Below are positions 3,601 to 50,745 of a stretch of DNA of 64,000 nucleotides, in pieces (position 1 is the stretch's first letter; every line of letters begins with the position of its first letter). The notes beneath the pieces are model-generated. The model saw nothing but the letters and a program-made list of their open reading frames with translations, was not told the origin of the DNA and did no database searches. Both the position numbers and the translations under genes were made by a program. Source of the stretch: Klebsormidium nitens. Lineage: Eukaryota; Plantae; Klebsormidiophyceae. The DNA is taken from positions 124,001 through 188,000 of the forward strand of contig DF236988.1 in NCBI GenBank assembly GCA_000708835.1. Reading direction: 5' to 3'.

Positions 3601-3775
3601 ATATTCCGGTTCCAATCTGATTCCGCCCACCTTTATACTGCTGCAGGGCCACGCGAGCAAGGCAAAGCTGGTAGCGGAACAGCAGCAGCCGAAGGAGCGG
3701 TTCGTGCTGAGCAAGTTCAAGAACGTGCCCACCAAGATCGACAACAAGCAGACGCTGCCGCTGCAGCGAGATTGA
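654..3775 (+). CDS. CFAP77: Cilia/flagella-associated protein 77 (FAP77/CFAP77-like); first coding exon not resolved
   Basis: Phase-consistent GT-AG exons 654-738, 1405-1492, 1982-2060, 2467-2567, 3176-3305, 3647-3775 give VRKPTRKLPGQEHAYG...ENAKEVTMVWKEHEPNPDNKPGPDFMAMN...FRETHDIRIK...LIPSDYNPEHVYG...TPIKKLIQNDYGDEWIRMN...TRAALGHA...FVLSKFKNVPTKI...*. This matches my recollection of the FAP77/CFAP77 motif order. Confidence 0.8.
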
Positions 3776-4847
3776 CACGTGGCGCACATTGAGCGCCTCC
3801 AAAAGGGGCCCAGATAGTAGGTTGAGGGGCGGCTGACAACTTGGCAGCGTGGTAACATGAGGGTAGTGCTTTCTATGCACAGCAATCGTTTGTCATGTTG
3901 AGCTAGTGACATGATCAGGAATAAAGACAGCTCTCACTGTCTTAAGTGGAGGAGCTCTGTACATATAATACCTAGTATTGGTTTCCGGTGGAAATGATAG
4001 AGGTAGGCCAGCTAGAGGTCGCCCCGGCGTCGCTGGACAAAGTCCGACGACTTTGGATTGCCCCTGTGGGCCCATTAAAGTATGCAGATGCAACATTGCA
4101 GCCAGAGCCCAATCGATCTAGCTGGGATTTAAAGACAGCAGGCAGTTGCTGTCTAGCTAGCCTAAGATTGCAGTGCTATGTGCATTTTAGCTGACGCGTA
4201 TCGATCTCCTCACATGCACCGACACTAAGTCACACGGTCATCTGTGCCAAGCCTGATGCTTTCTTTGGAATGTGCAAGTGCTCACATCAATCTAGCCATG
4301 CCGCCATGCAGGCACGCCAAACGTATTGACACAAATAGGAAGCCATGCGAATGCGCCCGACATGCATACGCTTCAATGAGCGGATCTTGCAAAAGGAGGA
4401 AGCTCTCCGCAACATGCATTCCGTGACCACAGCCCTCTCCTAATCCCAAGACCACGCTTTCCAGGGCTCAGATTCACGGTAAAGAGGGCCACTCAATCAT
4501 TTACAGGGTCTAAATTCAAGAAATGGTCGCTATGACCAAAAAACGTCTAATTTGCAGCCGGAAAGTTTTCCAAACACATACTGCAAGTGCCCCAAAACCC
4601 TTTCCCCCCTCACCCCGTATTCTAATCTTTACCTACCCGTTAGTGGTCTACGTTTGGCAGGTTGTCTACCATGGTTACTGCTCCTACGACTTTGACTAAA
4701 TTCTGATCGTTCCTACAGCACCGATATTACACTGTACTGCTTGCCAAAGAACCAAAGCTCGCTACGACAACGGGTGTAGAAACGTGCGCTACGCATGCAG
4801 GTGTCAATCTACGTAAACCCAACTAAGCGGTCAGAGAGTCGTTCGAA

Positions 4848-16266: not shown

Positions 16267-19200
16267 ATGGCCAAACCCGGCACGGCCAGCTCAGACGAGC
16301 GGGGCATGACCAAGAAGCAGCTGAAGCGGCTCGAAAGAAAGCGGAAAAAGTCTCTGGCAGAGGCGGGCCTTCTGCCAGGATCTTTCTCTGGCAATCTTGC
16401 TGCAGCATTGGACACCAAGGATGCATATGACGGGGATCATGTTGATGACGAGGACCGTGGTGTCAATGCTGGAGAAGAACGAGCCAAGCCTGCGGATCTT
16501 GACGCCGGAGAAGTGGCGCCTGGTGGTGGTATAAGCAGTGAGGAAGACGTGGATAAGGCGTCCGCAAGTTTCGATATAAGGAACTCGCTGGTGGGAAAGG
16601 TGGCGGAGGCCCTGTTGGCGAAGCAGTTGGAGGAGGAGAGGGCGGCTTTGCCTGCCAGTAAGAGGACCAGGCTTGGAAGCAAGGCTTTTGTGGAGGTGGT
16701 GCCCAGTGTGGGTGAGTCAGGAAATGTTAAGAAGGAGAAGAACAAGGAAGGGAAAGCGGGGAAGAAAGGAAAGAAAGAGAAGAAGGAGAAGAAGAAAGAG
16801 AAGAAGCGGAAGAAGAAGGAACGAGGAAGTCAGGAAGCGCCAGCCAATGCAGACTTGGACCACGCTGAGGTGCCGGAGTCAGCCACGAGGAAACGTCAGC
16901 GGGGGGTGGAAGCATCACAGCAGAAATTCAAGACTCCTGTTGACAATGCAGAGGGTCGGCAGACGCGGGCATCAAAGAAGCGGAAGGGCGAAGAGAAGGA
17001 AGAGAAGCAGAAGACAAAGCTGCCGAAGAAAGAGCAACCATCCCCCTGGCCTGATATCAAGTATGAGGCGTCGAGCGCGCGAGCGGTGCTTCGGCAGGGG
17101 CAAAGTGTGATGATTGATGGAGCGGCAAACGTTACTCTGATCGCAGGGGGGGCGTCTGTGATGGGGTACCGATTGAGAAGAGAAGAGGAGGTGCTAGTGA
17201 CGTCGTGCGGGCAATTGGCACCGGTTTCGATCATCGTCCATAACGGCGCAAGGGGGAGGAACGATCTTGGAGTAAAGGAACATGAGAACCGTGGTCTGAC
17301 AGGGGGGGAAGATGGGGAGACGAGCAGGGGAGAGGAAGCGGTGATGATGTTCAGCTCCTGCTGGTTGAGAACGAGCGAAGGGGCGGGCAGCTCAGGGGGG
17401 CGAAGGACGTTCAGACTGGTGAGCTAAGCTGTACTTCAAAAGAAAACATAAAAACTATATTCAAAGGTCAAACGCAGTACTCAAAATCTACCGAATAAAT
17501 GTAATATCAGGCAGCATACACAAGAACTTTGAGGAGGACAAGCATCCGAATCTGAGGTCAATGCAAGCAAGTCAGTGTGGAGCAATTACTGCTCCAAGAC
17601 TAGATCTAAATCGAAGTAAGATTTGATCCGTTTGTGTCTAGATGTGTGTGTTGAACAGAGACTCAGGAGTTGGCTCGCGAGTAGATCGGTCATTTGCCTC
17701 CCTTTCTTTCCGCCTCTTTGATAGTGTACAACAGCAAGCCCCGTTTGTAGCCAAACAAGCTGCTGAGAAGGGGGTTCTTTGCACGATGGAAAAGTCTCAT
17801 GCACCAATTTGCGATGCGTCTTCGCTTTCTGGCCCCATCATTTTCCATGAAGTCTGGAACAGTACCCCGAGTCTACTGCTTTTTTCCCCCTCTGATTTTT
17901 CTTGACAAGTCTTGCATTCTGCAGGAGCCAAAGGCGCCAGGTGCCTCTCGGTCATTTCCGCAAGCACCCGTATCCGAATCCAGAAACAAAGGGAACGAGA
18001 TCCAGCTTCAGCCGACCATCATCCCCCTCGCTTGGAAAACAGTGACTGACTCCGTTCTGAACGGAGCCAGCACAGCAACTAGAGCGGCAACAGATATTGC
18101 AGCAAAAGACCGATCAGACGGTTTGGGGGGCACAGGGCTGAGTGCATCGGACGGGGCAGCGGAAGCGGGAGTGAGCGGGAGGCCCCCAATTGTGGTGATC
18201 TGTGGAGGAAAGAACGTCGGCAAGTCGACGTACGGGCGGTACCTGGTCAACCGCCTCCTTGACCGGTGCGTGTGATGTTCTGTTTATCGATTTTCCGTGT
18301 GCCTCTACAATGAATCTCCCGCAGTCCTGTATGCTCGTTCTTACTCCTTTACACATCTGAAGGAAGCCAACGTCCGTGGTTCCAGGCTGTCCAGGGAGTG
18401 GACCAAGTTTTCCTATCCCTTCCAAATACGATTATCACCGGTTTGAAGTGTGGAAAACTGTCAAACGTTCTGACAAATGGGAGCCGCAACCTTTCTCGCC
18501 CCAGGCTTTCTTAATGTATGTGAGCCTATGCTTTCGTAGGAATAACGTCAGGTAGCATAACGCTAAGTAACACAGGGTCATGGACCGTGGAGCGGGTGGG
18601 GTTAAGAAGGAAATTCAGGGCGGTTAGGGAGCGGAGCACATCAATTTGTCGTTTGTCCTACCCACGGGGACTGTAGCTATCCTACCTAGGAGGTGTGCTA
18701 CCTAAAGTAAAGGTTATGAATGTCAAAACGTGGCAGTCTACGACCTGAATTAGATTTATCTCCGATCTAGTCATTGTCAATTCAGTGACCAGTAAGCTTT
18801 TCGGACCCTTACCAGAAACTCTGCGTTCGCACCCGCACCCGCACCCACCTCAACGCCCTAACTAACCCCATCCGTCCCTATGGATGTTCACTAGATTGAT
18901 CGGAGTCGAAATCTCTGGATTGTGAACGTAGGTCGATTGCTCCTTGCAGGTACTCAGCAGTGTCCTACTTGGAGACTGACGTCGGCCAGCCAGAGTTCAC
19001 CGCCCCGGGCCTCCTCTCCCTGCACCTGCTGACGTCACCCGTCTTCGGACCGCCCAGCACCCATATGCGAGACCCCAAAACGTTAGTGGCTTTCAACTGT
19101 GTGCCTGCTCGGACACTCCGTTGACCTGCAAAGTCAGGCGATTGCAGCCAATTTCTTTGCCTGGCGATGGATTGTGTATCCTCGAGTCTGACGTGCTCTG

Positions 19201-47812: not shown

Positions 47813-48233
47813 CTCCTCCAATTGAATTTCAACTATCTCTAGGCTCTAGGTGTGCCCCTCAGCTGCCGCTGAAGCCAAGTCCAAGCTGTACAGCCTCATG
47901 AACAGCTGGGGCCCAAACGAATTGAATTCGAATGGATATAAGAGCAAAAAATGGTGCATAAGCGACCGTGAGGGCGAACGCGTCGCGGAAACCGCTACTC
48001 AGGCGTCAGGCAACTGGCGTTTTTTTTACCGCACTGTCCGACAGAATATGTACCGGTTTCCAGATAACCTATGCCGTTTCCTTCCCATAGACAGTCCAAT
48101 CGGCATATGTTCTCGGAGATAGACTCAAGTCTCACAATCTTCGCCATGGCCCATTTCCGGAGGCTTGTCCTCCCAGACATTGCTCAGGGCGGCAACCCCG
48201 ATCTCCTGACGGCTTTTAGTAGACCGTATCAGC

Positions 48234-49517
48234 ATGGAGGAGCCAAAAAAGGAGGAGCCTGCCTCTCCTTGTGCCCGGCCTGCGGAGCCGGGTAATACGG
48301 TGCAGAAGATACGGAAGCATATTGACGAGTTCCGGAAGGCGTCCCCAGATGAGCACAAGCAATGATTTAAAAACACGCTAAGCAAGGTGGGTTGTGGGTT
48401 CTGGATTGTGTTGGTGGTACTAAGTCTTTCTATCTATTCTTTGGATGGGGAAAATTTCAACAGGACTCGAACGAAGAGAAGTCATTGATGTGATAGCAGA
48501 GCATACCCTTGACTGCCATCATTGCTACGTTGTGCTTTCGACTAAACACAAGCTACTGTTAGTATCCTAACGCTGGGCTTTTCTACATGCCAATTGAGTT
48601 GCTGGTGAAACTCGCATGGATCAAATCAGAAAGTGATGCGCGCGTTGATCTCAACCATGAGGGATTTGTGGAGTGAGGACCAACTGAGCTTTTCTTTCTG
48701 GTTTGTAGCAGTCATCAGCTATCCTACGCGATAAAGGTGATGAATTTGTGTAGAACTTGGGCAGCGTGCGCTCTCTGCCAGCTGTGCACCATAATTGTTG
48801 CGACGGTCTTGTCAAATCCTTTTCTTTCACAAATCAGATTATTAGTCATTGTCAAACACCTCCCTTTCCGCTACGCTCACTAAGTCTTGAGCGAGTACTT
48901 TTGAACACATCTTTCTGAGTTCCGGAAAAGTGAGTCCTGAGCTCTGAACGAGACTTCAATTGCAGATGTTTGGGTTCCGGAGAAAACCCGCAAAGCCGCC
49001 AGACACGTCACCAGATGCAGCGGGGAGCTTGAGCCCCCAGCCCGTGGAAAGCGTTCTGCGGCTGAGGGTTGAGTACTATGGAGATCCGGACCAAAAGGTG
49101 AATTGACTGCCGCCTTCTCAAGTGTGCACCTCTGGCTGTGGGACTGGCAGTATCAGAGTCTGTTTGAATTGCCTGAATCAATTCGTTGTACCATGTGTGT
49201 TCATACTATTCATCCTAGTATCTGAAAATCGTAAATATCAAGGCCCCTTAGGTCATGTGAAGTACATGAGAAGTGAAGTACTGGATTGAGGGGTAGATCT
49301 GACAGCTCACCGTTTACCAATCAAATGGCGTACTGCACTGCTACTGGAGAAGTCTTCCAACATCCAGCGGTATGTTGCCTTGGATCAATGAGTGCCCATA
49401 GATACGCTAGATCACATGAAAGACGTTCATCACAAGTTGAGTCTCTCCGTGCTGCAACAATTCTGACTCGTTTATTGCCCCACCTCGAAGCTTCCTTCTA
49501 CGTTGCAGTTTGTTTAG
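48234..49517 (+). CDS. Small uncharacterised protein (97 aa) with in-frame TGA at codon 44; candidate selenoprotein
   Basis: Exon 1, 48234-48386: MEEPKKEEPASPCARPAEPGNTVQKIRKHIDEFRKASPDEHKQ[TGA]FKNTLSK, then donor AAG|gtgggt. Exon 2, 48966-49097: MFGFRRKPAKPP...PVESVLRLRVEYYGDPDQK. Probable exon 3 from 49509: FV*. The recalled land-plant family motif (approximately HIDEFxxASxDEHKTCFKxTIQKMFG...VES) continues in frame on both sides of the TGA. Confidence 0.75.
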
Positions 49518-49552
49518 CACTTCGAGCGGAGTCTCAATCGTGCGCACGCCAA

Positions 49553-49617
49553 CAAAGCATTATGAAGGCTATGGCTCAAACTCCAAGCCTGAGCAGCCTA
49601 AGCTGGAAGTAGCTTTG
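49553..49617 (+). promoter_or_regulatory. Putative eukaryotic SECIS element (type II) in 3' UTR
   Basis: Folded by hand. Helix I: CAAAGC(49553-58)/GCUUUG(49612-17). Core: AUGAA(49562-66)/GGAA(49605-08). Helix II: GGCUAUGGCU(49567-76)/AGCCUAAGCU(49595-604) with a 2x2 internal loop. AAA at 49578-80, 11 nt after the core. Mini-helix CUC/GAG closing a 7-nt loop. Confidence 0.65.
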
Positions 49618-50745
49618 GATCTGAGCGTGTGCAAGGGCAGGCCGGCCCGCCACCATTGATCCACCATCGGCTTTGTACATAAAGAGGCAAATTAGATTGA
49701 TATTCCAAACACCCTTTCAAGTTATGTTATTTTACAATCGCTTTGCAAAGCCGATTGTGACAAGGATGATAAGTCATTGGTGACGGTTGTAAATGACAAG
49801 AAAGGCACCAAAGTGGGCACCAGAGCTTCATTGCATGGAGGTTTGGCTGATAAGGTACTCATCGTCAACTGGCTTCAAGCATCGATCAATGGAACGCGTT
49901 GAGTATCTAAAATGAGAGGCGCAAGCGAGAATGATCGTCGTTGAGCCTGCATGACTGCGTCATCTGATATTGTTCAATTGGAATCAATGCTTGGTGCACC
50001 GGCCCTCCATGATGTGTGGGCTGTGTATCATGCAACCAGGCCGTTCCTTAAACCAACATGGCACCGTCGTATGAGCTTAGGCATATAGTTATGTCGCGGG
50101 CAAACAATGTGGAAAAGAAGTCCGACTAGACAGTGCACACATGAGCCTCAGGCTGCAGTACATATGATAGCCAGCTAATGGATCTTCAAACGACGCTTCA
50201 AGCCTGCTGGCAAATATAAAGCAGTACACATGCATGTACTATAGGTGCATGTCTGTTTAACAAAGAGCGAGTCCATGCAGAATACCCACCAGACCTCCGA
50301 CGCGATCAGAGGCATGTCGCCCCATGATGATCCGTCTCGAATCATTGTATGTAGAGAGTTAGAGCGACAAGCGAATCTTCAATATACAAACAAATTAGTG
50401 CTATACTTATCTAGAAAAGTGCATGCAATATAATTGTGTTCGTCAATTTGGCCGGTGTGGTTGGTGCTCATCATCATGTACCGTACCCGTTATATACCGC
50501 ACGTATGGCTGCAAACGATCTTCACCGTATGCCTGCCTGCTGATGTGCGCGCGCTGAAGTGCACTTTGTATACGTTGCGTCTGTGAGTAGAGTCTGATTC
50601 TCGCGCACGCCATCTCAAATATAAGAGTGCCGTCGCGAAATCTAAGATTTTCGCAGACTGGGCTACCGCTGCCGCTCCACTAGTGAGGAAATTGAGACCT
50701 GGAAAGGGTCTGCAGTGCGATCACCCGCGCCAGATTCCCTGAGGC

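Follow-up and report, generated by a model that had tools for sequence, protein, structure and literature searches.

A transcribed Klebsormidium nitens gene with a conserved in-frame UGA probably represents an undescribed selenoprotein family of green algae

The 64,000-nt stretch of Klebsormidium nitens DNA analysed here (contig DF236988.1, positions 124,001 to 188,000; hereafter 'the window', in whose coordinates all positions are given) carries on its forward strand an expressed gene of three exons, the first of which contains a single in-frame TGA. Transcript evidence was taken from five RNA runs that share one organism label and come from four studies, and from one RNA run and one cDNA-like run under a second label. 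The resulting gene structure is as follows.

48135–48386, + strand: exon 1, 5′ UTR up to 48234 and coding from there on; RNA contigs end at the joint 48386
48234–48362, + strand: start codon ATG (48234) and the pre-Sec codons (43), from the translation; includes the conserved helix region ...TVQKIRKHIDEFRKASPDEHKQ
48363–48365, + strand: in-frame TGA, putatively read as selenocysteine (Sec), residue 44; seen in seven RNA/cDNA and two DNA runs and in 14 of 14 loci
48366–48386, + strand: seven post-Sec codons, FKNTLSK, up to the donor; conserved among 14 loci
48387–48965, + strand: intron 1, GT..AG, 579 nt, phase 0; joint 48386/48966 in seven of seven RNA/cDNA runs
48966–49097, + strand: exon 2, 44 codons, MFGFRRKP...SVLRLRVEYYGDPDQK, last residues ...DPDQK; from RNA contigs
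49098–49508, + strand: intron 2, GT..AG, 411 nt; joint 49097/49509 in six of seven RNA/cDNA runs
49509–49857, + strand: exon 3, codons FV, stop TAG (49515–49517) and 3′ UTR; from RNA contigs
49553–49617, + strand: SECIS-like type II hairpin; from Rfam, conservation with the related contig L001, a family model and a pattern scan

The 5′ ends of the RNA contigs lie at 48135, 48159, 48163 or 48164. The donor that follows FKNTLSK reads GTGGGT, and the CAG acceptor of intron 1 ends at 48965. Most contigs stop at 49814–49818, while in one cDNA-like run a poly(A) tail stands behind 49857. Every RNA run yielded deep contigs for the mRNA, contig depth being a poor measure of expression. The TGA, on which an earlier note made from the sequence alone had based its proposal of a selenoprotein, is unaltered in the contigs of all seven RNA/cDNA runs and of the two DNA runs, with no other letter in any of them; five studies in all supply the RNA contigs that confirm it and both introns. 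Spliced mRNA with the UGA read through gives a 97-residue protein with Sec at position 44.

The gene outline drawn in the earlier note was accurate for exon 1, where the ATG, the one TGA, the seven further sense codons and the GT donor at 48387 are all present in the sequence and its translation. For exon 2 it had the start right (MFG at 48966) but not the end: the exon closes with ...DPDQK at 49097 and not with ...VES, and a third exon adds FV and the TAG. The end coordinate it had assigned, 49617, marks the 3′ end of the SECIS-like hairpin, not that of the coding sequence.

Some other features of this region deserve mention. An out-of-frame upstream ATG at 48146 opens a 49-codon ORF (48146–48295) that overlaps the main start; of the contigs, just the one that reaches furthest 5′, to 48135, includes this ATG, the others beginning downstream of it at 48159–48164. 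On the opposite strand, intron 1 contains a weak C/D-box snoRNA-like match to snoU31b (48831–48912, – strand; 21.4 bits, E 0.43), which is probably due to chance. There is no tRNA gene within the 64-kb window.

A word-index search with the 43 residues that precede the TGA returned a single protein, P0001 (42 residues, 81% identity), which has the same end point. The gene on its contig, the JGI metagenome sequence L001, is built like that of the window: a TGA, LKNTLSK, a GT intron, a second exon of 45 codons and a third exon reading FV-stop. Between the two sequences synonymous sites are saturated (pS 0.76 before the TGA), and introns and UTRs are 38–53% identical, no better than chance; in two conserved blocks after the TGA pN is 0.06–0.07. 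The pN/pS ratio is 0.10 over the first 17 post-TGA codons and 0.31 over the last 24, with synonymous sites near saturation.

To cover the relatives at the DNA level, we tabulated 14 loci (the window and 13 further ones, Chara braunii included), which represent 13 distinct sequences. The same codon is TGA in 14 of 14 loci and TAA or TAG in none. Behind it the reading frame continues with the consensus [LF]-K-[NRS]-[TS]-[LF]-x-[KRS]: the first position is written with five different Leu/Phe codons, the Lys at the second is invariant, and there are 199 synonymous codon-pair differences across the seven codons. A GT donor directly follows the seventh codon in 11 of the 13 distinct sequences, so the position of the intron is conserved as well. 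On its far side, directly after a CAG acceptor, eight loci (the window, L001, L004, L010, L012, L013, L016 and L022) keep the exon 2 peptide, with the consensus [MLF]-F-x-[RK]-x-P-P-K-P-x-V-H-S-V-F-R-L-x-V... The first codon of exon 2 is TTG, CTG or TTC in L004, L010 and L013, where there is no early ATG; translation of the peptide thus has to come through the TGA and cannot start as a separate ORF. Synonymous change over a conserved peptide in 14 loci, together with the pN/pS values against L001, shows protein-level purifying selection downstream of the UGA, not the relaxed selection of a pseudogene that the earlier note had named as a ground for refutation. The alternation between TGA and Cys codons that the same note had predicted was not seen, as none of the 14 loci has a Cys form.

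Individual loci have peculiarities of their own. In L002 (2703–2860) exon 2 is readable in two frames: with the first acceptor it reads LFSFR... and goes on into a hydrophobic tail rich in Cys and Leu, and with another acceptor, 8 nt downstream, it gives a family-like ...VVVLPLQVRRV. Alternative splicing, an error in a C run or a genuine variant with a membrane anchor could each account for this double reading. The intron-less, cDNA-like contig L007 ends its frame with ...LRVEVGQ-stop (340–410), and 15 nt past that stop it contains, out of frame, GTTGTTTAG, which resembles exon 3 of the window, TTTGTTTAG (FV-stop); a mini-intron may have been retained here, or the C-terminus may have diverged. 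L005, a marine, GC-rich family member, has in its 3′ region (911–1013) a direct repeat of about 52 nt in two tandem copies that may be an assembly artefact.

The SECIS-like hairpin of the window lies about 44 nt past the true stop and about 200 nt past the UGA in the spliced mRNA. Its parts are listed below.

49553–49558 with 49612–49617, + strand: helix I, 6 bp
49562–49565, opposite 49606–49607, + strand: AUGA, opposite GA
49567–49576 with 49595–49604, + strand: helix II, 10 positions with two central mismatches
49578–49580, + strand: unpaired AAA
49581–49583 with 49591–49593, + strand: mini-stem, 3 bp

This 3′ UTR element has all structural features of a type II SECIS, and every Rfam score obtained in the family (18.7–31.7 bits) is under the gathering score of 35. 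Rfam SECIS_1 places it at 49554–49616 with 18.7 bits (E 2.6) and gives 27.4 bits in L002 and 31.7 bits in L008 (Chara), both on the gene strand, downstream of the gene and likewise below the gathering score. When the 3′ UTRs of the window and L001 are compared, the sole conserved island is a block of about 75 nt at the SECIS, with 87% mean column identity. The earlier note's expectation of a SECIS in the 3′ UTR thus agrees with a conserved SECIS-like element at 49553–49617 whose Rfam score is below threshold.

Same-strand SECIS-like hairpins were found downstream of the gene in eight of the 12 gene regions scanned (the window, L001, L002, L004, L007, L008, L012 and L013). A pattern scan with strict settings did not recover the element of the window itself. 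The relaxed scan revealed exactly one element per 3′ region in the window, L001, L002, L004, L007 and L013, the background being 0.13 hits per kb for the whole window with both strands taken together; the spacing between AUGA and GA is identical in five of six pattern-scan elements. Covariance models were built iteratively, from a two-sequence model, R1, that was too narrow, to R2 and R3. They found the elements of L013 (E 0.017), L007 and L012 (E 0.065) and a second element in Chara, none of which was part of the model that found it. R2 and R3 missed L004, whose apical stem is long. With the family model R3 the hairpin is the only significant match in the 64-kb window, at 52 bits, a score that is not independent, L001 being in the model.

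For the SECIS candidates a MAFFT alignment was set aside, since it takes no account of structure. In a six-sequence alignment 89% of the cells are paired, compared with 34–48% when the partners are slid, figures that are inflated by the fitting of the alignment to the structure; compensatory, both-side changes occur in 13 of 19 pairs, again in an alignment fitted to the model structure and biased towards it. Helix II is missing from the minimum-free-energy folds of the window element and of its L001 counterpart, and the fold z-scores are –0.9 for the window and –0.65 for L001. No SECIS-like element was found in L005/L006, L016 or L022, and R2 and R3 gave no match in L005, L016 or L022.

The Chara contig has two SECIS-like hairpins downstream of the gene, separated by about 280 nt (L008, 21488–21553 and 21765–21842). 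The first is the one scored by Rfam at 31.7 bits, and the second was found with our own covariance model (E 0.001). Both may be SECIS elements of the same 3′ UTR, or there may be a second selenoprotein gene.

We also asked how the family appears among predicted proteins. Searches comprised an exhaustive HMMER run over 1.84 billion representatives and N-terminal (seven-sequence) and C-terminal profiles run over 5.8 billion proteins; the two profile searches, both made with a word index, used length windows of 33–105 and 35–110 residues, which span full-length proteins, and all queries were half-proteins of 33–63 residues. All matches of the three protein searches are algal-type sequences that end or are broken at the TGA. 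From HMMER and the seven-sequence profile search we obtained about 33 clusters, one of them from Tetraselmis astigmatica, and their sequences end ...A-[ST]-P-E-E-H-x-x, which corresponds to the residue before the window's TGA; the single exception is Chara braunii GBG63883.1. One JGI gene call renders the TGA as W and carries the frame on into the intron. That gene predictors would miss such a gene, as the earlier note had anticipated, is evident from these clusters and from the Chara model, which splices around the TGA. The note had further described small land-plant proteins with Cys in the Sec column. None was found among the 1.84 billion representatives or in the two profile searches of 5.8 billion proteins; the motif described for them is unsupported, and a protein that similar should have scored well even with half-protein queries, which could nevertheless have missed a distant Cys form. 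For the metagenome scan an eight-sequence N-terminal alignment was used; a two-sequence alignment gave poor patterns and nothing that was confirmed.

Chara is the nearest named relative (58% identity). Its public model GBG63883.1 (CBR_g39664; L008, BFEA01000043.1, 4001–21392) exits exon 1 after ...KHVREF and joins far-downstream exons, thereby omitting the TGA at 4181–4183 and the conserved LKNTLNK, and we conclude that it is wrong. Exons 2 and 3 of the Chara gene were not placed; the intron region is mostly masked as N. The same contig has a type III hammerhead ribozyme match in the long intron region (18955–19010, + strand; 45.8 bits, gathering score 48.5) and a U2 snRNA match just upstream of the gene (3670–3801, – strand; 54.6 bits, over the gathering score).

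Full-length models with X at the Sec position were built by script for ten loci. They are 71–97 residues long, have a single Sec each and are neutral to basic (pI 6.0–10.4, above 7.5 in eight of the ten). The N-terminal 15–25 residues are variable and often begin with MGC, MSC or MG; in the pre-Sec region H, F, A, E and H are invariant against 25 relatives. AlphaFold2 run on the family alignment predicts a helix at residues 19–35 of P0008 (pLDDT about 85 at the centre), which carries the invariant His and Phe (...K-x-R-x-H-x-K-E-F-x-E-A). The signature of the family is, in order, this helix, a Thr/Ser-Pro break, E-E-H-x-x-U-L-K-N-T-F, a Pro-rich linker and a C-terminal V-H-S-V-F-R-L-x-V. If the second stretch is helical, the invariant His (–3), Asn/Thr (+3/+4) and Sec would share one face.

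No hydrophobic segment is present in the ten models (maximum 19-residue Kyte-Doolittle mean below 0.9), nor is a CxxU, UxxC or CxU motif, and the description of the protein as free of CxxU/UxxC motifs and of transmembrane segments holds for all ten. The redox pair of Cys13 and Sec44 suggested by the earlier note is not a family feature: Cys is wholly absent from four of the ten models, and Cys13 is thus not an obligatory resolving residue. The window pieces fall into no Pfam family, and the 26 family members together yielded only two stray matches, both sub-threshold. A PDB profile search revealed no relative, and N-terminal pieces gave only sub-threshold, unrelated clusters in the ESM Atlas.

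The statement that the protein does not resemble known selenoproteins likewise stands, with no Pfam, PDB or published-family match among those checked. SELENOK and SELENOS come close in being small, with a single Sec and no thioredoxin fold, and in occurring almost only in the Sec form (PMC7539508). Their Sec, however, is the second- or third-last residue, in a disordered C-terminal tail behind a membrane anchor, whereas in the present family it lies mid-protein, in or next to a helix, with no hydrophobic segment, and there is no sequence similarity. MSP and the Ostreococcus hypothetical proteins 1–3 are also lineage-restricted algal proteins that were found via SECIS and a conserved UGA and had been missed by annotation (PMC2375036). 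Yet there are membrane segments and a second Sec in MSP (Lobanov et al. 2007, PMC2375036), the Ostreococcus proteins have GCUG or CUGR ends, or GLUNIAQ in a membrane protein, and the E-E-H-x-x-U-L-K-N-T motif is found in none of them. SELENOW, H, T, M, F and GPX are likely redox proteins with a Sec near a helix start and polar residues nearby, features that the family may share, and in GPX an internal resolving Cys is absent too. Unlike thioredoxin-fold selenoproteins, it has no CxxU/UxxC/CxU motif, beta-alpha-beta core or Pfam match, and 71–97 residues with a long disordered N-terminus are too small for such a fold.

There is a small chance that this is a real selenoprotein whose family has already been described under another name, for example in SPDB, in supplementary tables or in subscription journals. 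Our literature search was limited to open-access text, where we found no description of the family, and de novo predictors have been run on 137 algae (PMC7539508). However, the three novel families of that survey do not include the present one, and only two selenoproteins are reported for Klebsormidium, in PMC7539508 and PMC6627142 alike. It is absent from the three Ostreococcus 'hypothetical' selenoproteins, which differ in sequence, and its motif has no match in the supplement files of PMC2375036, MSP alignment included, or of PMC7539508. The lack of Pfam and PDB matches and the public Chara model, which still splices around the TGA, point the same way. On balance it seems reasonably likely that the gene is a real selenoprotein gene and that its family is also undescribed.

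It is very unlikely that the UGA is read without Sec, as Trp, Cys or Arg by way of a near-cognate tRNA, and that the 3′ hairpin has nothing to do with it. Programmed read-through does prefer UGA, and all Rfam SECIS scores are under threshold, but hairpins with AUGA, AA and GA stand at the expected place in eight of 12 gene regions and show compensatory pair changes. Moreover, the family is seen only in Sec-using algal lineages and not in land plants, which lost the machinery (PMC6627142). A leaky stop strictly kept over the chlorophyte–streptophyte split would, in our view, be unprecedented. It is hardly credible that the TGA is a true stop behind a 43-residue peptide, with the downstream conservation due to a second independent ORF or to RNA-level elements: gene callers do predict exactly such a product in about 33 clusters, and exon 2 happens to begin with ATG in the window, L001, L012 and L016, yet the seven codons between TGA and intron are kept in frame at the protein level despite abundant synonymous change, exon 2 lacks an early ATG in L004, L010 and L013, the codon is always TGA, and, while a stop codon upstream of two exon junctions normally marks an mRNA for decay, contigs are deep in every RNA run (as far as depth can be taken as a measure).

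We infer that Sec is inserted at the UGA. With high probability, the locus is a nuclear gene that has three exons, is expressed and encodes a soluble protein of 97 residues, its UGA at 48363–48365 being recoded to selenocysteine (residue 44); the type II SECIS hairpin of the 3′ UTR would direct this recoding. Complete Sec machinery is reported for streptophyte algae, Klebsormidium nitens and Chara braunii included, and none for land plants (PMC6627142, PMC7539508). The recoding mechanism, a UGA with a 3′ UTR SECIS, is standard; what is new is the protein family, together with its apparently Sec-only occurrence in green algae. Judging by the sequences collected, the family spans both branches of the green lineage, with Chara braunii and the present genome on the streptophyte side, Tetraselmis on the chlorophyte side and many environmental algal contigs. 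It is apparently Sec-only, every member seen having Sec and none Cys at this column. We consider it probable that these helical His-x-x-Sec mini-proteins of non-thioredoxin fold form an ancient Sec-only family of the whole green lineage, lost rather than converted to Cys in land plants.

As to function, our suggestion is a tentative one. The Sec might sit on the polar side of a helix, with the invariant His (–3) and Asn/Thr (+3/+4) as neighbours, and serve there as a redox-active selenol whose regeneration would rely not on an internal Cys but on a thiol from outside the protein, glutathione or thioredoxin for example. Such a selenol-based role, in redox reactions or in scavenging, is conceivable, at somewhat less than even chances; the main functional alternative is a His/Sec metal site.

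Only a few dozen families of eukaryotic selenoproteins are known, and new ones are rare. If our interpretation is true, this short and, by its deep contigs, highly expressed gene of chlorophyte and streptophyte algae, truncated by gene predictors, has escaped every selenoproteome survey, and it raises the number of selenoproteins in Klebsormidium above the published two, and likewise the counts for other 'selenium-poor' streptophyte algae. Profile-based surveys would then give too low a count of selenoproteins in the closest algal relatives of land plants, and E-E-H-x-x-U-L-K-N-T followed by a phase-0 intron would be an easy marker for correcting annotations. It would also be possible, in a small protein of non-thioredoxin fold, to examine what a lone selenol does beside a conserved His, and the family would provide an example of a Sec protein that was seemingly dropped at terrestrialisation instead of being converted to Cys.
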